DNA of 64,000 bases, taken from NCBI RefSeq assembly GCF_964204645.1, contig NC_134030.1, positions 851,355 through 915,354 of the forward strand. Direction: 5' to 3'. This document shows, in pieces, positions 3,001-63,964 of this stretch. Both the position numbers and the translations under genes were made by a program. How positions within the stretch are numbered: position 1 is the first letter of the stretch; the number at the start of each line of letters is the position of its first letter. The notes under the pieces are model-generated. The model searched no databases. It was given only the letters and a program-made list of their open reading frames with translations, and was not told the origin of the DNA. This DNA is from Tubulanus polymorphus (taxonomy: Eukaryota; Animalia; Nemertea).

Positions 3001-6000
3001 TCCGATATATGATAGGCTGTAATTGATGATAATATTATTTGATATATTTCAGGGTGTGATTGAGATGATATTTGATATATTTCAGGGTGTAATTGAGCTG
3101 ATAATATTTGATATATTTCAGGGTGTAATTGAGATGATATTTGATATATTTCAGGGTGTAATTGAGATGATAATATTTGATATATTTCAGGGTGTAATTG
3201 AGCTGATATTTGATATATTTCAGGGTGTAATTGAGATGAGAGACAGTTACGGTCGGGACCACGTCGTAGAAAATCAAGTTCAATATTTCTTAGATCGATT
3301 TTACATGAGCAGAATCAGTATCAGAATGCTGATCAATCAACACAGTAAGTATTCACTGTATCTGACCTGTATCACACAGTAAGTATTCACTGTATCTGAC
3401 CTGTATCACACAGTAAGTATTCACTGTATCTGACCTGTATCACACAGTAAGTATTCACTGTATCTGACCTGTATCACACAGTAAGTATTCACTGTATCTG
3501 ACCTGTATCACACAGTAAGTATTCACTGTATCTGACCTGTATCACACAGTAAGTATTCACTGTATCTGACCTGTATCACACACAGTCACCAAATCAATTA
3601 GCTTATGAGAGCTGTTATAAAATAGGAGAATGGCCATTTGCCCAGACTCTCTACATAACAGTCAAAAACTGCGTTAGCCTTCTGTGACTCAATGAATCTG
3701 GAGCCTTGAAGCTGCTTGTATTTGAGAATAGTTTCTAATGATTTCGACCAGCAGTCAGTTAATACCGCCGTAGGTCAAGGTCTGAGCTCTTGTATCAGTT
3801 CTGGGGAAAAATAGATACGGTATTACGTGCGCAAACAAACCTTGACCTTCTGTTCTGTTTATTTGAAAAATATTCCGCGTAAATAATTCAACGATTGAAC
3901 TTTGAAATTTCACATGAAATGTTTTTAAAAGGTTTATGCGCGATTACTGATATTTGTCATTGTGTCGATAACATTGTCTCAAATTAGAACTCGTACCAAA
4001 AGTGTTTAGCTATGAAACGTGACCCGTACCGCCTAGTTGTGAGTTTAATTGACAACACAAAAAGGTTTAAAGTTTAAGTGGAACTTGTATTTTCCAGTTG
4101 AGATATGGACGACCTGCTGTGATTACATTACTCGGTTTAATGTATCAACTGGGAATATAGGGGTGTAGGGAGGGAGTAAAAGGGGAGTTGTTTGTTTTGG
4201 TTGTGTTTCTGCGGTCACTTTAACATTGGCAATCATATCATCGATGTTATTATTATTCGACGATATTAAGAGTGTTTTTAATCTTACGGACAGCAATAGA
4301 ATGTTTGTTGTTGTTGAAGTGCTTTTAAATATGAATACACCAACATAAGATATAATTGAAATTCTTAGATATAACTATATTCAGTATTGTCTATGGTTAA
4401 TGTCTTTCTTTTCAAATTAGATAATGAAAATTGATTCATTCAAAAATACTTTTCTCTGAATCAACTTCAGTGAAATAAGACTTTTTGACAAATCGTTCGA
4501 TGAAGTGTAAAATGGATCGATGTTGTTTTAGTTCAGTCTGTGCTAGTCAATTCAACACTTATAACTGGTTTAATTCTACTACTGAATGTAATTATTGTCC
4601 TTTCAAACTATATGAAAAAATGTTATTAGTTTCACCTGTTTATAGGGTATATAAAAACTGCAGTTTGATAATTCTCAGGATCACACACCGATCAATATCT
4701 ATATTTATTAATAATTGTGGGGTGTTTATATTTTGTAGCTCTAATATTTGGTAGCAGTTTAACCGGTCACCATCGCCATATAGGATGTATAGATCCGCAC
4801 TGTGATGTCGTATCAGTTGTAGAAGGTACGTATCGTATCGTATCGTATCGTATTGACAAAACTCTTGAGAGGGGTTTGGAGGTCCAAGTAAATTCTAAGC
4901 ATTGTAGCCAATGTTAGTAATATTTCATATAACAAAGTCACTGAAAATTTTCTATGACAAAAATAGTGGAAGTTGGGATCTTGTGGCGAGGTGCGTTTGC
5001 GCCCAGGAATCATGAGAATTCAGTTGTACAGTTATCAGTGATCATTGTTTGTTTTTGTTGTGATAGTGTGGGTTGTTATTAGTAGTCGAATAAAACAACT
5101 TTAATCGCGTGTAAACTGTAGATACATGAATAAGTCTCACCTTGGAGTGAATTCAAATGATTACTCCAAGGTCCCATCATAGAATTTTCTATGATAACAG
5201 TTTATTGAAATGAAACCACAACATTTTGGCTGTAGACTAAACAGCTATCATCAGGTGGAATGTGACCAGAAACAGAAGAACTTCTGTTTACGCTTCAATT
5301 TCTGGTCACATTCCACCTGTTAGGGAACAGCAGAAACGTGGTTTCATTTTGATAAATTCTATCATAAATTCGAATTGTGCTATTTCTTCATGTATTGAAA
5401 TGTAGTCTGGATTCTATAATGTATCTCTCTCTATTTTTACAGATGCGTTTGATAATGCACGTTTTCTATGTGATCAGTATTATCTAGCTTCACCTGAAAT
5501 AGAAATACAATGTCATAACGGTAATAAAAATATCTTTATTTCTCATCTCTACGCTAAACCCCCTGCTCTAGGGGGGGGATACCCATATCAGGGTTCTTAC
5601 GTGGATCAGAGAATCCAGATTTAGTTCTCCCTGCAGAGAAAATCAGGCATTTTTGAGTCCTTTGAAAATCAGGGAAAAGTCTGGGAATTTGTGACGAGTG
5701 GCACAAGGAACCTCTTGATAAGAAACAACCCTCACTGAGGATATCTTATAATTTAATCAGGAAATTTGAATTTTTGGTGTCTTGTTGTTCTGAGTGTCAC
5801 AAGGAACCTCTTGATAAGAAACAGCCCCCACTGAGAATATCCTATAATTTAATCAAGGAATTTTTGGTAGGATCAAGGAAAATATTAGAATCTTGAATTC
5901 TCTGATCGATAAGTACCCTGCTACAGGTAACCCTCAGCTGTAGGTGGACCCCCTGTTTGCCTGTATTAATGTATGTGTGATATTTACAGCATTACAACCT

Positions 6001-16840: not shown

Positions 16841-18048
16841 TTAACGCGTGTACTCTTCAATCATACGGATTGGTACGACTATTTCATCGTGCGGTCCCTC
16901 TCCTCCTGTTCTCGATTTCTCCAACTCATACGCCTCGTAACCGTTAGCGACGTTATTGATCATGAATTCAAACAGTCCCGACCACGCTTCGTGTATCTCG
17001 CTCGTGTACGAGTGACCCAATACGTTTTCCCACGTGTACAAAACGCTCTTTTTAAATTCTTTCAAATAGCTGGGATGAAACGCGTTGATCAGTCCGTGTT
17101 TAGCTCCGAGCGGGATCAGACGATTTAAGGCCGTCTCGTCCAGTCTGTAGATATTCGTTACTACGTCGTTGATGAGAGTCATGAAGTTCGCCGAATGGGC
17201 GCGGAACACGGAATTCTGGTATAACTCGTCACCTGTCAGCGATCTGCAGAAATAAAGCTTTTTTATATCGCTTTGTTGCAAATGAGATATGAATTTTACA
17301 TGAATGAAAAGTGGAGATTCCCAAGGTTTGAATGTTGCCAAAGTTATTCATCTATCGACCAGGGGCCGGTTTCATGTAAAAGTTTAAGCTTAAATCAGTT
17401 AAGTTTGAATTGTTGTCCTCATTGAAAACATGAAGTAACCAAATGGCAATTGCACCAAAAATTTTAGTAAAAAAATTTTCGTGAAACTGGAACCCTATGA
17501 TTACGATAAAACACGCATCACAAATAGTTATAAAAATAGGGGAAAAATGACCCAACAATTTATAGTGTAATAGCTTAAATGGATTTTTTATTGGAGATTT
17601 GATTTTTCCATGGTTCATAGCTGAGGACTATGAATTTGTATATATTGCCTTGTAGATAGAAGAACTATTATCAAAGGCGCTATAACAGAAACAGGTCGCG
17701 CGGCGACTTGAGAGCAGAGATACCTTGAGTTGACGGGATTTGGGAGGTAGGGAATGCCACATGATCGGTGGCAAATATGGCTATTGCATGTCCACCAACT
17801 CAAGACACGATCTTAACAACTTACCGAAACGAGAAGGAATTCTTTATTTCCGGGCTGTTTGCAAACATATGCATGAATATCTTACAGCCAGTATCGACCG
17901 CTTGACGATGTTGACTAAAAGTCGGCCACGTTTTCTGAATGATTTCGATTTGAAAATCTCCTAAAACGTCTGCAGAATTTTGTTGATTATGGCGTCGTGA
18001 ACTGTACCATTCTAACGGCACATCGTACATTGAATTACACATACCCAT
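16841..18048 (-). CDS. Globin with N-terminal acylation motif (globin X-like), 208 aa
   Basis: Coding exons 18048-17825 and 17243-16841 (donor CG|GTAAG, acceptor TTTCTGCAG, phase 2). Globin landmarks: IQKTW (A helix), CKIFMHMFANSPEIKNSF (B/C/CD1), FRAH (E7 His), LGAKH (F8 His), EAWSGLF (H helix). N-terminus MGMCNS. Probable 5'UTR exon ending at 18880 (GTAAGT donor). Confidence 0.9.
17360..17496. mobile_element. MITE family D (GGGCCCAGTTTCAC[AG]AAA TIR)
   Basis: Copies at ~18699-18838, ~19639-19773 and ~59326-59461 share internal CATGTTTTCAATGAGGACAACAATTCAAACTTAAC; mostly in CCWGG contexts. Confidence 0.8.
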
Positions 18049-18409
18049 AATTGCTCTTCACAGCCCTGGAATCATGGAATCTGATAAATATATCGACTAA
18101 AAAAACATAAAAATGGTAAACACGATTTTTAACCCTTTTAGTAGCCCAATTTCAAAATACCCATGAATTGAATTACAGGCAGCCAACAAAGGATCAACAC
18201 AATATGATAACCGGTCAATTAATTGAAAAAAGTCTCGGGAGGTATAACTGTAACGGACACACCAGTTTAACAAGGGGGACACCAAGTACGTATCAAACCA
18301 ATCAACAAGATAGGGGGAAAATTCGATTCCTATCATTTCCAATGTGTTTTAAACTAATTCATAAGCATACGTTTGATTTAGACCTACAAATTCGGAACTA
18401 TAACTGAAC

Positions 18410-26561: not shown

Positions 26562-29500
26562 TCACATGTTTATAGAGTGAATACACTTGTCACAGTTTAA
26601 CATCACGTCCGGATTGTAACATTCAACTTGAACTGTACAAAACTGAAATTTATATTTCTGTTGTAGAATTCCGGTCGCTTGATTCAAAATCTGATCATAA
26701 TCGCAACCACTGACTACAAAATACAAATTACAACAATCGTTTCAGTTACCAGTAATCGCATTTATTAAACAATTCCCGCTTACAGATCCAATGCATATTC
26801 TATCCCAGGGTCCGATCTAAACATTTGTCCGATTGCCCGGGACAAGTATATTCTCATCAGGGCAAGTAGGTTATCATTATCACTTTTTCCCCAGGCTAGT
26901 GCAATTTTATGTCACAATTCCCATTCGATACAACGGATTTCTTAACGCATTTCGTTTTCACGATAAAATGGAAAATTTTTCAGAAAAGGAATCATAGCGC
27001 CACCAATTGGACTGCCTGTGTAGGGCAAGTAGCTTTTGGAGGGGGCAAGTGAAATTTCAGATATGCTTGCCCCCGGGCAAGTGGCTTTCATTCCTTAGAT
27101 CGCACCCTGTGTCTAATGTATTTCTAACTGTTATTTAAATTATTACAGCTGAACTGGCTTAATCCGGATCGGCTTAAGTTAACCCAGATTTTGGTCCAAT
27201 CCGGACAAAAATGACAGTCTATTTTTCTAATCCGGATTTCCTGTAAACCGGATGAATTTTGTTGGTCCCAAATGATCCGAATTAACTGGATTTGACTATT
27301 TCTCATTCATAATTCAAATGTATCGTCTAACGACCCGTATTGTTACTATATGTTGCTAGGTAACGTACCTACAGCTACGTGTACGGCTACAGCGAATTGA
27401 TCAATAGATAACGACCACACGTGCAGACTATGAGCCATTTTAACTCCGCTGATCTTTTCCAACGAAGTCTTAACTTTTTTCACCGAAATTGACTTTGGTA
27501 CTCCTTGAAAATAAATATAAACGGTTACTATCCTGATATTTCAAGTGCCCAGGGGCTGGTTACATAGTCATGGCTTAGACTTAAGACCAGTCTAAGACCA
27601 ACTTAGTTCAATAGCTAATCTAACAACTTAAGACCAGTCTTAAGATTTGAGACCACTTTTGGACTTAAGTCTCGACTGTGCAACTGGCCCCTGGTGAGAT
27701 TGCAGGAATCAAAAACAGGCCCTGGCGAGTGGGGGATTGAAGCATAGGCCCTAGCAAGCGAAGGAATCAAATAACAGACCCTGGTGAGTGAGGGAATCAA
27801 AGAAAATACCCTAACAAGCGAGGGAATTGAAGAACAGACCCTGGCAAGCAAAGAAATCAAATAACACACCCTGGTGAGTTAGGGAATCAAAGAAAAGGCC
27901 CTGGCAAGCGAGGGAATTGAAGAACAGACCCTGGCAAGCAAAGGAATCAAATAACAGACCCTGGTGAGTGAGGGAATCAAAGAAAAGGCCCTGGCAAGCG
28001 AGGGAATTGAAGAACAGACCCTGGCAAGCAAAGGAATCATCGTAGAACGAGCCCTGGTAAATGAGGGAATTGAAGAACAGTCTGTGGCAAGCGAGGGTAT
28101 TAGAACGTACCTTCCATGATGACGGTTATAACATCTCTGAGAACAGTTAAAGTTGTTATCAGCACCAATATCGAAAACAAAAACGTACAAATCGGATCAG
28201 CTATTTTAGCACCGGGCTGAAAATAATTCAACACGTAAAATTTCATTTATCGAAACCCGATTCCGAAAATTCAAGATAAATCGAAATGCATTTTAAACTT
28301 TAAGAAGTAGAATTTAATCGATAATATTTTTCACAACTATTTCCTGGCTCCGATATTTCTACTCGTGAACTTACGACAAATTTGATAATATAAGCAGCAA
28401 TGAGGACTCCGATACTCTGAATCAGATCACCGATAACGTGGATAAACGCAGCTCTCACGTTTATATTCTTCTGACTAGGGGCGCCACCGTGACTGTGACC
28501 GGTAGCGCCACCGTGGCTGTGACCGGTAGCGCCACCGTGGCTGTGACCGGTAGCGCCACCGTGGCTGTGAACGTGACCAAACGATGTAGGATGATGACAA
28601 GCGCATAATTCGGAATGTAAAACAACTCCCATACTGAAATTATAAACAACCCGTGACTAACTACAGCTGGGGCCAGTTGTTCAATAGTTAGAGATTCGCG
28701 GATAAATGTCATAGTTACAATTTAAATTGTATTGTTATCGACCGATTAATTGTCTCGGCCCAGCGCTATGACAAACTTGCGGAATACTCGCTTATCGTTG
28801 TCATTGGGAAACGACTTAACATACGAATGATGACATTGAAAATTGAATCGAAGGAAATTGAGACTCAAAAATAGAGATAACTTATGCGAAAACTTATACA
28901 AATATTGCCTTAAAGACTGTATTATCAAGAATAGATAGTTGTATACATCTATAGTTGCTGGCATCAGTAATTTTTCTCAATCTAGTATGTTATATCTGGT
29001 ATCAAAAAGATGGCAGATTTAATACAATAGACTTCAGTAGTTTAGCTACGGATTGCCTCAAATCATCGCCTACCCCATCGGACAATTAGTTTTCTTCATC
29101 AATTCATTGTGATAACAGCTAATCCCTGCTCCGAACTACCCCAGAATTTGCACACCTTGAAAAGAATGACCTATTCTTGACTTAGGCAGATTGCGTAGGA
29201 TCTGAGGCAAGCGCTGAGTCTACTGTAACCGCATTTTAATGTTGTTATATTAATTGTAAAAGAACGTACATTATATTAAAGGCGACTCCACATCCTGAGG
29301 TTATCAACATGTCATCGGCGTTGATTTCGTAATCTCTATTGATAAACCGGAGTACAGCGAGATAGACGAGAATACCAGTTACAATCCAGATTATCAATAC
29401 ACTCACTAACGCTCCTAATACCTCTACAAATAAATCATAGATTACAACTTACTACGAAATCTCATCTTAAACGTTCGATTGCTAAGATATGAATCTGCTG

Positions 29501-31136
29501 CCTGGACCCTGCACCCCTACAGCCTAGACCCTGCACCCCCTCAGCCTGGACCCTGCACCCCTACAGACTAGACCCTGCACCCCCTCAGCCTCGACCCTGC
29601 ACCCCTACAGCCTAGACCCTGCACCCCCTCAGCCTGAACTCTGCACCCCTCAGCCTGGACCCTGAACCCCTCTCAGCCTGAACCCTGCACCCCTCAGCCG
29701 GGACCCAGCACCCCTCAGCCTGGGAGCTATATCCCATCAGGCTGGACCTATAGGCATTAGACATTTTATCAGCACACTTTCAAAAACTGATCATCTATAC
29801 TTCACGTGTGTTCAGTGCTTCACCTGAGACATTTTTAATTGAAAATGAACTACAAACACCAGATATTAGACATTTTATCAGCACACTTTCAAAAACTGAT
29901 CGTCAATAATTGACTCTGAGAGTGAATGTTTTAGAATGCAGATTCATACCTATATCTAAGATTGATTATCTCGTAGATATCACTATACAAAGGATAATAA
30001 CTAAACAACGGCTTACACTACAATACGTACCTGCTCTTCGGAATCCAAACGTATGTTTAACGCTTGCTGTTTTATTTGCGATGAATAGAGCGAATAAACT
30101 GATTATAAAACTGCATAAATCGCTGGCTAAATGGGTGGCATCAGTGATCAGTGCTAAACTATTAGCGTAAACACCACCTGTAAATATATAACATATACAT
30201 CAGTTAGTGGAAACACAGCAGTCATTGTTAGGGGACAATTATAATACATTATTTTAATCTTTAACAAAGAACTGTGGAACTCAGTCCAGAACTGTGGAAA
30301 TGGGTCCTGAAGTGTAGAACTGGGTCCTGAACCGTGGAACTGGGTTCAGAATTGTGGAACTAGGTTCTGAACTGTGTCACTGGATCCAGAACTGGGTTGA
30401 GAACTATGGATTGGAACTTGGTCTAGAAATGTTGAACTGGATTCATATCTGTGAGTCCAGAACTGTGGAACTAAGTCCAGAAGTGAGGAACTCAAACTGA
30501 ATCCAGTCTGGATTGTAACTTACCAATTATTTCTCCAATCATGAAAGCGAGGCATAAAACAGAAACAGCTATGAGTTGATTACGAGCGAGTTTATCAGAA
30601 CGGCGCTCAGCCTCTGAACCGGTCCAGCGAGGATGAGGATGGCAATGATCAACTTCTATATAATCATCGTCAGAATCTTCATCTTCATCTTTATCGTCTT
30701 CCAGTAACAACGAGTCATCATCGTCACCGCTACCTGCCAACAACGGTCGTCGTTGATGTTGTTGTATTGTTGTATGGTTGCGTAGTAACAGTACGTCGTC
30801 AGCGTTGTGACAATATTCCTGTTCTCGGTCCGACGCGCCCCTACCCTCTCCCTCCCCCGCCGCTGCTGCAGGTCCCCCGATCACTAATCTCGGACTTCCT
30901 AAACCGATTTCAAACTCTTGATCTCGAAGAAGTTCGTTTTCCGATGAGTTCAGTTTTTGCATCTGATTATTTTTCCGTGGTCGAGAAGTTGGAGGAGGGG
31001 GTAGATATACTACTGGCTCCCCAGCAGCAGCAGCAGCAGCAGCAGCAGATCTCCCTCCACCACCTCCACCGACCCCGTCACTGTCAGCGCACCTGGCGTT
31101 GTCATCCTCATCACCTCTCCTCCTCTCACTCATCAT
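26562..31136 (-). CDS. SLC30A2: Cation diffusion facilitator zinc transporter, ZnT2/3/4/8 (SLC30A) type, ~521 aa
   Basis: Exons 31136-30524, 30177-30031, 29423-29270, 28633-28375, 28216-28111, 27503-27369, 26713-26562 (TGA), phases consistent. Motifs: [15 protein letters not shown] (TM2 HxxxD), TFGFRRAEVLGAL, His-rich loop, [21 protein letters not shown] (TM5 HxxxD), [30 protein letters not shown]-terminal CxxC. Minus-strand AATAAA at ~25186-25191. Symbol reflects the nearest family; exact orthology is untested. Confidence 0.93.
26807..27109. mobile_element. hAT-like non-autonomous element
   Basis: Ends CAGGGTCCGATCTAA / TTAGATCGCACCCTG; internal repeated GGGCAAGT subterminal motifs. Confidence 0.55.
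27710..28100. repeat. 30-bp minisatellite in ZnT intron 5
   Basis: Units like CCCTGGCAAGCGAGGGAATTGAAGAACAGA. Confidence 0.9.
29500..29722. repeat. 22-bp minisatellite in ZnT intron 2 carrying MRE cores
   Basis: Unit CCT(G/A)GACCCTGCACCCCT(A)CAG; TGCACCC at 29510, 29532, 29554, 29576, 29598, 29620, 29642, 29686. Confidence 0.9.
30268..30492. repeat. Degenerate minisatellite (GAACTGTGGAACTGG core) in ZnT intron 1
   Basis: About ten diverged ~20-bp units. Confidence 0.8.
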
Positions 31137-31654
31137 CTCCTGGTGACTGATGATCAAACTGCGCTGATTGAAATTACAAACCTTTGTTCGTTAAATCTAC
31201 ATCGGCACTTTTAAAATTAAGTTTTCTTTAAGTTGCCAATAAATGTATATTTGTATTGCTATTTATTTCCGGGTACGGAACGGTACATTTCGTCCTCGAT
31301 TTTTAGAGAAAGTTCTGCAATTTTTTTCTTTCGATAATCATCTGTATGAATTTTCTGTTTGAGTTGAGAAAGATTTATCTCTTTCCAAAATGGAAAATAT
31401 CGTCTTGTAAAAATTAAAATTGCTTTTATCGGGACAAATAAAGTTTGCGTTGAATTGAAAATAAATTTCTCACTATTATACGAAACGTCGACAAAGTCAT
31501 TTGTGAAAAAAATATCTAAAAAGTGAATTGAAACTATAAGTCTTTATGTTAAAATGTAAAGTAAAGTAAAAATATCGGGTTTGTAGTGAAAAAAGATAAG
31601 GAAATTGCTGTATTTGAATGGACGTTTCAGTAGAAAGTTTTACATTCACGCAAC

Positions 31655-31810
31655 GGAAGAGACGTGAATCCATTGGTTGACGTGAAGCCGCTTCACGTGA
31701 CGCGACCCGGCGCTGTTTCACGTGTATGACCCGGCACCGCGTATAGCTTCACGTCTCATAGCCGCCGCCATCTTTACTAGAGATAGTGGCTTTATGCACA
31801 CGGTTCTAAG
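31655..31810. promoter_or_regulatory. Candidate bidirectional promoter between ZnT and ZIP
   Basis: CpG-rich patch with ATTGG (CCAAT box, 31672), TCACGTGAC (CLEAR/E-box, 31693-31701), CACGTG (31719), three further TCACGT half-matches, YY1 CCGCCATCTT (31765-31774) and MRE TGCACACGG (31795-31803). Confidence 0.65.
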
Positions 31811-31950
31811 GTTCAGCAGCGCCAAGTAGAGTTAATACCGCCAGTTTTAATACTACGGAGACTTTTAGAAACATCAGCAACAGCAGCAGCGAAACAGGGA
31901 AAGAACCAGAGAGAACTACTGATCAGGAATATTAGAAAAACTGACTCAAG
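31760..31950 (+). other. Probable non-coding exon 1 of the ZIP gene (start approximate)
   Basis: Strong donor CAAG|GTAAGA at 31950/31951; matching acceptor TTGTAG at 36167, upstream of the ZIP ATG at 36294. Confidence 0.6.
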
Positions 31951-33939
31951 GTAAGAGGGCATCGAATCGAATCACAGGCTTCCGTGCGTGGTATGTCCCG
32001 AGTGTGTGAGATTATGAATGAATGAATGAAAATGTGAATCATTGACTGGGACTGACTGAGGTTAGTGAGCACTGTTCGTGTCCTGATCCATCGGTCATGC
32101 TAGTAACAGGCTAGCCGGCGCCCGGTCAGTCAGACACGGCCAGGTGACTCACAATAACTACTTTCTACAACAATAATGGCAGGGTTGCAAGTCATGGGAA
32201 ACCTAGACATGAAAAGCAAAATTTAAACAACACAGTACAGTTCCCACAGAGGGAGGGAGATTGGGAAACACTTTTGGGAATTTTGAAATAATGATTCCCA
32301 TTTTGGAAATATTTGGGAAATTTTCCTAAAATCAGGGGAATATTTGGGAAGTATTTTGGGCAATTTTCTTCAGCGAAGCGAGTTCCCTTGAATAAACCGG
32401 TCACCATTAAAATGTCAACTGTAGTATGATGTTATCAGTTCTTTCTATGAAAGCAATTGAAAAATAACCTGGGAAAAACCTGGGAATGTTTTTTGAAACT
32501 GGGAACCATGAAACAAAGAAAATTAAAATATTGTTTGTATAGGCTTTTTATATGATGGTCAGAAATCCTTCAAGTTAGGGACCTTTAAGGTAACGCTAGC
32601 TACAGGCCTGAGATATGATGATGAAACCCCTCGGTGTTTGAGGAGTGTCATAAAGATAGCAGTTGTAGTAATAGATTATAGTTTCTGTCAATTGTCATGT
32701 TTGATTTGATAACAATAAATATAAAATCCATATGAAATGAATATGTGATAAACTGGTGATATTTTACCACCTTGCTCTACTATACAGATCTACTGATAAT
32801 AACCATTGATAGATAAAAATTTGAGTCTGGTGTAGTCGTAATCATAATATTGAATTCTGAGTCTGAAATGTTTCCTCGAGCTATATTCGATATAAGCGAA
32901 AGTTCATAAAAATTAGTCTTTATGAATGTTTGATATAAGCAACTTCAGCCACAACTGAATAACAGGTATCACTGGATCTTTGACCAAGGTGATATCTGAA
33001 TCCAGGTTGTTAGAATGATTTCCTTGAACAGAAGAAAAAGAGTCTCGAAATGTTTTATTGAGCTAGTGTAGTTTGTTCGATTAGTGCTTTCAATTTTATC
33101 CTAATAGTCAGTAATGCTTCTAGTGTTAGTTATAAGAAAAAAATGGCATATATATTTGATATTATCAGTTGCTGATAAACATCACCTGCCTTTTAGTATT
33201 GATATATCACCAGAACTCTGATGATTTATCGATAAAATTTATCAGTAATGAATAAACAAAAATTTCAACCCAAATAAAAATGTCATGATTAATTTCACAT
33301 ATAAGTAAATGTGTGGGTGGGTGGGATTGAAATGTGAAGATTTTGTGGTCAAATAAAGTTCATCGAATTAATATATAGTTCTTAAAGTACGTTTGAAACC
33401 ACTTCATACACAATTGATATGAATAATCGATATTTTTATGCAGATTTTTCTAGCTCTAAGTACGTATAACCCTATTATGTTGTACCCCCTTTTATCCATT
33501 GATGGTGACTATTGATTTTTAAAAATTAGGTACAAAGGTTCATAAGATGGTAACAAACTAAACCAAATTTATTGATACAAATGATCACCAGGATAATGAT
33601 ACCGCTCCGTATCAGTTGAAATCTAACTAATGAGAAATGTTACCTGATTATCAAGTTATCGATAGTTATGTGAATGGATCAGTGTGTATCATGTCCTCTA
33701 TTCTGGTCATTATTCCACGGGCGATTGACCACTGGTCATCCACACACACACACGGGTGATTGACCACTGGTCATCCACACACACGGGTGATTGACCACTG
33801 GTCATCCACACTTATCCACCGGTGTAACGCGTAGAAAATTAGCTGCATCATTAAACATGTTACTGCATTACATGATACAACCACCATTCATCTGTAAGCT
33901 ATCTATAATAAAACTGTTTATCACTCTGAACTTACTATC

Positions 33940-34600: not shown

Positions 34601-36293
34601 TATTTACATTAAGTCTAACATGTTCGAGCCTGTAACAGTTAAAGTGTGTTTAAGTGACAAACAATGTACCTGTACTGATGTAAATATTGTCAATGACATT
34701 TCATCAATTTAAACGGTCTTTATTTTTGAATATTGGATTTTAGATAGAATATTTGTACTGTGTAGATGTGGTAGTTGTAGAGCTGCAGGCAGCTGACTGT
34801 AGATAGAATAACAAGTCGTTTCAGTACAAATACATATTAGTGTCATCATCATTCTGTTGGTTGTTAGAGATGAAATATAGAATAGGCATTTGACTTGTTA
34901 GATTCTAAGAAATTCAATTGTAAGATGAATTTCTTAATTTCATTGAGGTTTAAAGTTATCTTATATCACTCATAGAAGGCTTTAAATAAGTGTGTACGAA
35001 AGTACCGCAGATCACACAACTATTATCTGTACTTCGATTTCCGATTTCAATAAAAAAACACCCTGTTTCACTCCTAGCAGGTATGACTGGTAGGTTTGTA
35101 ACGGACACCAAATCAAAGTAAATCAAATGAATAGCAGCGTCAATCCCTATTATAAGGGTTTGTAGTACACATGAAGGAAATGACAACTTTGAGAATTTAT
35201 TTATTTTTTATGTACAACTTTTAAGGTTGAATATATTTAAAATTCCCCCCAAAGTAGAAATCCCCTGGTCTTTATTCTGTATATCAATTTAATCATTTAG
35301 AAAAGGATTGAAATTTTTCAAACATTGATCTCGTCACTAGCAAAAGTATTTTATTGTCGTTTCGAAGAGATTTTAAAATTTAATTTGAAGTTTGGTTAGG
35401 TGTTAGTTTAAGCAGTGTCAGGTATCATCGAGCAGTCCTCGCGCATTCCTTAACAGACAACCTGTTAATTCTACCGGAAATACCTAGAATAAATCCACGC
35501 GTATAAAAAAATACTGTTACAATAAACAACAATGGTCGTCGCTACGTAGAATAACAGGTATTTTAACTGGAAATACATGATTCATAGCTGTAGGGATGAT
35601 CGCGGCCCGGGTGGTGCCCCCGCTGAGGCCCCGCGGGTCAATAGGGTGTCTCCTAGACTCGGCTAATACTCAGTTTGCGAATCGACCACGTGTGAAATTG
35701 TTTTATTAATTCCTAGTTTAATTTACCGGAAAAAAACGAATATAAAAATGATTTGTTTGTCTGTGTATGTGTGGAATTATTGTGAGTTGTCAGTTTGTAC
35801 GGTTTAAGACTCATGAGGTGTTTAAGGAGCAGATCGGTAGCTTCCTCTCCCTCTATACACCTCTCGTGGTTTATTGAGAGGAGTTTGAAAAGGGGTGAGG
35901 AGGGAGGATAGGTATGGGAGGGAGGATAGTTTGAGGAGTAGGGGGATTGGTTGGGGAGGGGGATAGGTCGGAGGGGGATGGGTCAAAGGAGGGGGGATAG
36001 GTTGCAGAGGGGGATATGTTTTGGATAGGTCGGTGGAGGGGGATAGGTTGGAGGAAGGTCGGAGTAGGGGATATCTACACAGGAATCTCATGTGAATTCT
36101 CTCTCATCCAGTTGTATACTTTTTATCGTCTCTTATCAATCACTGCTTATCTTGTTTTTGATTGTAGGAATATCAGATAGTTACAACAGTAGCAGCAGCA
36201 GCAGCAGTCTCAGCCTCAGCCTCCTTCATCAGTCAGTTCAGTGTTGGTGATGTTTCCTGTTAGAAGCTAACACTCTCTCAGTCTGTTGTAACA

Positions 36294-63964
<27,671 letters not shown>

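Follow-up and report, generated by a model that had tools for sequence, protein, structure and literature searches.

The window, a 64-kb stretch of the genome of the palaeonemertean Tubulanus polymorphus (G000:C6:851355-915354; genome 268 Mb), contains a ZnT2/3/4/8-type gene on the minus strand and a ZIP6/10-type gene on the plus strand. Both genes are complete and are arranged divergently, with 815 bp between the ZnT ATG and the end of the predicted ZIP exon 1. The features of the locus, in window coordinates, are as follows.

26562..31136, minus strand: ZnT2/3/4/8-type SLC30 gene (PF01545), 7 coding exons
31136-30524, 30177-30031, 29423-29270, 28633-28375, 28216-28111, 27503-27369 and 26713-26562, minus strand: ZnT coding exons, with GT-AG boundaries
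31137..31950, no strand: shared CpG-rich intergenic stretch (promoter, ZnT 5' UTR and predicted ZIP exon 1; CpG observed/expected 1.3-2.0)
31661..31755, no strand: ACGTG-word cluster (GACGTGAA three times, CACGTG at 31694 and 31719, reverse CCAAT at 31672-31676)
31765..31774, plus strand: predicted YY1 site CCGCCATCTT, reading AAGATGGCGG on the ZnT strand
31795..31806, plus strand: predicted MRE (MTF-1 site) TGCACACGGTTC, 12/12 identical in Lineus (L018:5564)
31947..31958, plus strand: 5' splice site of the predicted ZIP non-coding exon 1 (exon end 31950; 155 nt past the MRE in both species)
36168..63964, plus strand: ZIP6/10-type (LIV-1) SLC39 gene (PF02535 and PF21116), exon 2 from 36168, ATG at 36294
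about 48204-48470, 56881-57057, 58050-58253, 60996-61253, 62553-62637, 62905-63093 and 63818-63964, plus strand: later ZIP coding exons (small exons may be missing)

The coordinates and motifs named in the preliminary description were all found in the sequence. The ZnT start codon at 31136 is seen as CAT at 31134-36, and the donor of the predicted ZIP exon 1 is at 31950/31951 (CAAG/GTAAGA).

The exon lengths of ZnT total 1566 nt (521 codons and a stop). The spliced models of ZnT and ZIP were searched exon by exon. The best solved relatives of ZnT are ZnT8 and next ZnT4/ZnT3, with ZnT1 far weaker: exon 2 matches ZnT8 with E 2e-9 vs 4e-3 for ZnT1, and exon 3 matches ZnT8 with E 6e-13 and leaves ZnT1 unmatched (the homologue search with exon 1 gave no matches). 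The Cation_efflux domain is nearest to ZnT2/3/4/8, not to ZnT1/10. HxxxD motifs are present in TM2 and TM5 (HLASD, HVIGD), and the protein carries an N-terminal HCH, found also in the Lineus ZnT, and a His-rich loop with GHSHGG repeats. An acidic dileucine-like xDSLL is common to both nemertean ZnT N-termini and is suggestive of a vesicular or lysosomal location. Because of the solved relatives, the HxxxD motifs, the HCH, the His-rich loop and xDSLL, the gene product is probably a vesicular transporter of the ZnT2/3/4/8 type rather than a surface exporter. Of the earlier label "zinc exporter" the ZnT family stands, while the exporter function gives way to probable vesicular sequestration; an affinity to ZnT1 is not borne out by the matches, which place the protein in the vesicular group. 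Fly ZnT35C is located at the plasma membrane (PMC1635269).

A second ZnT2-type paralog is found on contig C8. Three core MREs lie within 100 nt there (P about 0.002), ~5.8 kb upstream of the gene (L010:1904-2090, G000:C8:13307900-13308090); after them come an Inr-like TCAGT and a GTGAGT donor. This cluster is a candidate classic zinc-inducible promoter, and the C8 paralog may be the zinc-induced copy. In the window, a globin gene (PF00042; at least 2 exons, 16841-18057, minus strand) is present ~8.5 kb downstream of ZnT; it was not seen at the Lineus locus within the 2 kb covered.

The ZIP gene is of the LIV-1 ZIP6/10/foi type, with a Zip domain, the motifs HELPHELGD (HEXPHEXGD type) and CPAIVYQ (CPALLY-like), and a His-rich N-terminal ectodomain. 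The named proteins nearest to it are ZIP10-like; its N-terminus has its best full-length relative in the ZIP10-like protein of Lineus longissimus, and exon by exon the best matches are mostly this protein and the tandem paralog (a quick tree served only to label the matches). Within 31700-33900 the plus strand has a single strong donor, at 31950, and the exon-2 acceptor (...TTGTAG/G at 36167/36168) has a good pyrimidine tract. A non-coding exon 1, ending at 31950 and spliced to 36168, is predicted from these signals.

The tandem paralog, a second ZIP10-like gene (XP_074652801.1), lies just beyond the window at G000:C6:925001-940800, and the YY1+MRE module described below was not found in the 9.6 kb upstream of it. 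At this locus Lineus has a single ZIP and Dimorphilus has two tandem ZIPs. The two Tubulanus copies are 98% identical over 165 nt (window 62550-62714 and G000:C6:939774-939938, L003:4774-4938), a tract that takes in the HELPHELG metal-site exon plus about 75 nt of the intron after it, against 72-90% identity in the other exons; the transport site looks to have undergone gene conversion recently, unless the tract is an assembly artefact. Only the copy in the window has an intron in front of the HELPHELG exon. A ZIP intron also holds a 72-nt tandem array of 24 copies with 95% matches and minus-strand open frames (window 42224-43929), probably a minisatellite.

The CpG-rich patch between the genes, reported earlier, was recovered over 31200-31900, where CpG observed/expected is 1.3-2.0 vs 0.70 for the whole window. 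If exon 1 ends at 31950, as predicted from the splice signals and the conservation in Lineus, the start sites would be less than 1 kb apart (815 bp at most) and the stretch would be a bidirectional promoter. The ACGTG cluster, which includes the CCAAT box (ATTGG at 31672-76), is a candidate activator core for bZIP (CREB/ATF/XBP1-type) or bHLH (USF/TFEB) factors. The CACGTG at 31694 lies within TCACGTGA and agrees with CLEAR at 9/10 positions on the minus strand. The YY1 site at 31765 is the only copy of CCGCCATCTT in the 64 kb. The MRE at 31795, TGCACACGG, follows the consensus TGCRCNC and is the sole MRE of the interval, 659 nt from the ZnT ATG (444 nt in Lineus). Shuffling the Tubulanus interval yields a core MRE about 30% of the time and TGCRCNCGG 1.5% of the time; the 268-Mb genome has 5277 copies of TGCRCNCGG, 18 of the 12-mer TGCACACGGTTC and 81 occurrences of the YY1+MRE module. 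With the core so common in shuffles, the single-genome observation is weak on its own, and it is the conservation in Lineus that lifts the site above chance.

Tubulanus and the pilidiophoran Lineus are on opposite sides of the deepest nemertean split (PMC8468679). Only 10/42 four-fold sites are identical between them (synonymous saturation), their introns and non-coding DNA do not align, and the genes flanking the pair differ: the downstream neighbours in Lineus are not adjacent to the pair in Tubulanus, and the lysosome-related-organelle gene HPS3, two genes downstream of ZIP10 in Lineus (L018:51053 onward), is on contig C7 in Tubulanus. Retention of the linkage and of the MRE in relatives, on which the preliminary description let its proposal stand or fall, is observed in Lineus longissimus, which keeps the pair, the YY1 site, the 12-nt MRE and the 155-nt spacing. 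A Cation_efflux + ZT_dimer gene is head-to-head with the ZIP10-like gene there, with coding starts 4.9 kb apart vs 5.2 kb in Tubulanus, and for 7/7 Tubulanus ZnT exons the best match is the Lineus ZnT. In the orthologous interval (L018:5121-5719), as in Tubulanus, CCGCCATNTT is followed by TGCACACGGTTC in the same orientation, with a spacing of 24 nt (30 nt in Tubulanus). The Lineus YY1 site, CCGCCATTTT at L018:5540, is oriented as in Tubulanus. The distance of the MRE to the ZIP donor is kept, that to the ZnT ATG is not. The 12-mer is the longest same-strand word common to both intervals, and the YY1+MRE module occurred in 1/20000 Lineus shuffles. If no site is specified beforehand, 6.5% of shuffles (P about 0.065) give a shared word of at least 12 nt, and a 13-nt reverse-strand match between the intervals is present as well; the 12-mer carries weight because the site had been named before Lineus was examined and because its context is kept. 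The divergent ZnT2/ZIP10 pair with its YY1+MRE module is real and deeply conserved.

The E-boxes fare differently. CACGTG is absent from the Lineus interval and the GTCACGTGAC-like CLEAR element is not conserved, which weakens the TFEB/MITF input earlier proposed to act through the CACGTG sites. The half-sites kept are GACGTGA/ACGTGA words (at 5320, 5482 and 5529 in Lineus), which fit bZIP factors no less than TFEB; Lineus also has TCATGTGA near the ZnT ATG.

MTF-1 is putatively encoded in the Tubulanus genome. At G000:C1:6250080-6251000 lies an MTF-1-like gene whose six C2H2 fingers, in the expected order, are distributed over short exons; it was matched by both search patterns used, which we take to represent MTF-1 fingers 4 and 5. 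Searches of this locus in the PDB and the Atlas returned generic C2H2 matches only, without naming MTF-1. An earlier pattern match was rejected, as the locus has no zinc fingers. The metallothionein family search gave no matches and is uninformative.

Outside nemerteans the ZnT/ZIP linkage was not seen in locus views of up to 10 kb. No ZnT was seen within the 5-10 kb available upstream of ZIP in Lingula, Solemya, Pinctada, Haliotis, a bivalve and a JGI contig, where the first intron may exceed 10 kb; the upstream neighbour is a DUF2465 gene in Dimorphilus and a methyltransferase gene in Branchiostoma. From the ZnT side, the short upstream stretch available in two animals holds no YY1+MRE module. 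Of 27 metagenome matches to the module, the 26 compared (leaving out L051, labelled a human-gut metagenome) have no ZnT or ZIP nearby and were dismissed as chance.

The arrangement suggests a reciprocal zinc switch. The short bidirectional promoter would receive its basal drive from YY1 and an ACGTG-binding activator, with ZnT transcribed leftward and ZIP rightward, and at high zinc MTF-1 would occupy the single conserved MRE. Were ZIP transcription to start at the YY1 site or close to it (about 31760-31775), ZIP exon 1 would contain the MRE 20-35 nt from its beginning, and MTF-1 bound there would block Pol II as it does in mouse Zip10, in which MTF-1 at an MRE at +17, in a non-coding exon 1, blocks Pol II, and in which the mutant oligo keeps ACGG, the tail of the Tubulanus MRE (PMC3124522). 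The same bound MTF-1 would be upstream of the ZnT start and could activate ZnT, as for ZnT2 (ZnT1/ZnT2 are regulated by MTF-1 and ZIP10 is inhibited; PMC10761908) and for fly ZnT35C, which is induced by MTF-1 (PMC1635269). That two head-to-head genes can share a single metal element has precedent (PMC12239621). One binding event would then lower uptake and raise sequestration. We infer the opposite-sign output and the position of the MRE inside the ZIP transcript from these parallels, and hold that one MRE lowers ZIP and raises ZnT at high zinc only tentatively, at somewhat short of an even chance; it is a plausible and well-posed hypothesis rather than a result. With a shade more reserve, the pair may be an ancient two-gene module, in place since the ribbon-worm root, in which a single MTF-1 site is at once the importer's roadblock and the sequestering transporter's enhancer, so that one bidirectional promoter would have opposite outputs wired into it.

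Several observations count against the reciprocal switch. Its MRE is a lone one, at 659 nt (444 nt in Lineus) from the ZnT ATG, and zinc induction may instead reside with the C8 paralog and its three MREs. Genes in head-to-head pairs, moreover, mostly share parallel regulation (PMC2670823). The MRE might serve ZIP10 alone, as a repressive element of ancestral origin placed in the first exon or close to it, with ZnT a zinc-unresponsive housekeeping passenger on a shared YY1/ACGTG promoter and the C8 paralog taking the zinc induction. The C8 cluster speaks for this, as do the spacing kept to the ZIP donor and not to the ZnT ATG, and the tendency of YY1-rich promoters towards ubiquitous activity. 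It is also favoured by TGCACACGG upstream of ZIP10 in Lingula and in Branchiostoma (962 nt before the ATG and 57-98 nt before donor-like sites, with the methyltransferase head-to-head there), but such matches are near the chance rate, in 4/12 regions vs about 2 expected. Moreover, the site can be no more than about 650 nt from the ZnT start, MREs work in either orientation across hundreds of bases, and the ZnT/ZIP pair has been retained although its neighbours were shuffled. We regard a ZIP10-only role as rather unlikely, though a serious contender.

The orientation of the YY1 site bears on where the start sites are. In its usual sense form the site reads AAGATGGCGG; at this locus that form runs in the direction of ZnT and would place the ZnT start near or on the MRE, against the reciprocal switch. 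YY1 sites in human promoters are strand-biased and lie just downstream of starts (10.1101/2023.06.27.546584; PMC11160661). YY1 would then set a ZnT start at about 31775-31810, with the ZIP start to the right of the MRE, and an MRE between or on the starts would give parallel control or repression of ZnT. One HZA element of C. elegans induces both genes of a head-to-head pair in parallel (PMC12239621). A ZnT start at this position, however, needs a ~650-nt 5' UTR containing an upstream ATG and the entire ACGTG/CCAAT cluster, YY1 can be a cryptic initiator on either strand, and the genome-wide test of YY1 orientation relative to donors was flat (27 vs 22), so that this layout appears improbable. 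Least probable, in our estimate, is that the 12-mer is bound by another factor or is coincidental, the pair being kept only by promoter overlap. The 6.5% shuffle rate without a prior hypothesis and the 13-nt reverse-strand match would agree with it, and documentation of MTF-1 action is scant for many invertebrates (PMC5485937), but the MRE was named ahead of the Lineus comparison, it fits TGCRCNC, its orientation, YY1 neighbour and donor distance are kept, and it is located between two zinc transporters in a genome with an MTF-1-like gene.

The sign of MTF-1 action is thought to be set only by the position of its site relative to the start, a rule that has so far rested on comparisons between genes. 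The nemertean promoters, in which a single conserved site separates the importer from the sequestering transporter, offer a natural and direct test of it within 0.6-0.8 kb. The pair also suggests that the control of ZIP10 by an MRE is older than vertebrates, and that head-to-head genes need not be co-expressed in parallel.

We found no earlier description of a head-to-head ZnT/ZIP pair in a literature search of incomplete coverage. To our knowledge, no ZnT shares the mouse Zip10 promoter, and human SLC39A10 and SLC30A2 are on different chromosomes. Already known are the activation of ZnT and the repression of Zip10 by MTF-1, at loci that are not linked, and the parallel HZA pairs (PMC12239621). 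The Tubulanus locus resembles mouse Slc39a10 (Zip10) (PMC3124522) in having a ZIP10-type gene, a predicted non-coding exon 1 and one ACGG-tailed MRE close to the likely start; it differs in the ZnT on the shared promoter, and in Tubulanus the start and the repression are predicted only. As in mammalian ZnT1/ZnT2 (PMC10761908) and Drosophila ZnT35C (PMC1635269), an MRE is near the ZnT start, but those genes own their MREs, whereas the only MRE of the Tubulanus ZnT is shared with an importer. A single metal-response element (HZA) between divergent genes is found also in C. elegans mtl-2/T08G5.1 and cdr-1/F35E8.10 (PMC12239621), where it acts through HIZR-1 and not MTF-1, the induction is parallel, and no importer is paired with a ZnT. 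The HIZR-1 to HLH-30/TFEB control of lysosomal zinc storage (PMC13160143) likewise combines a zinc sensor with an E-box input, a possible one here; unlike that system, the Tubulanus CACGTG boxes are not conserved in Lineus. Finally, the stretch is similar to TATA-less bidirectional housekeeping promoters (PMC2670823) in its length below 1 kb, its CpG richness, and its YY1 and CCAAT elements, but differs from them in that the two genes move the same ion in opposite directions and that a predicted sensor site is conserved between them.
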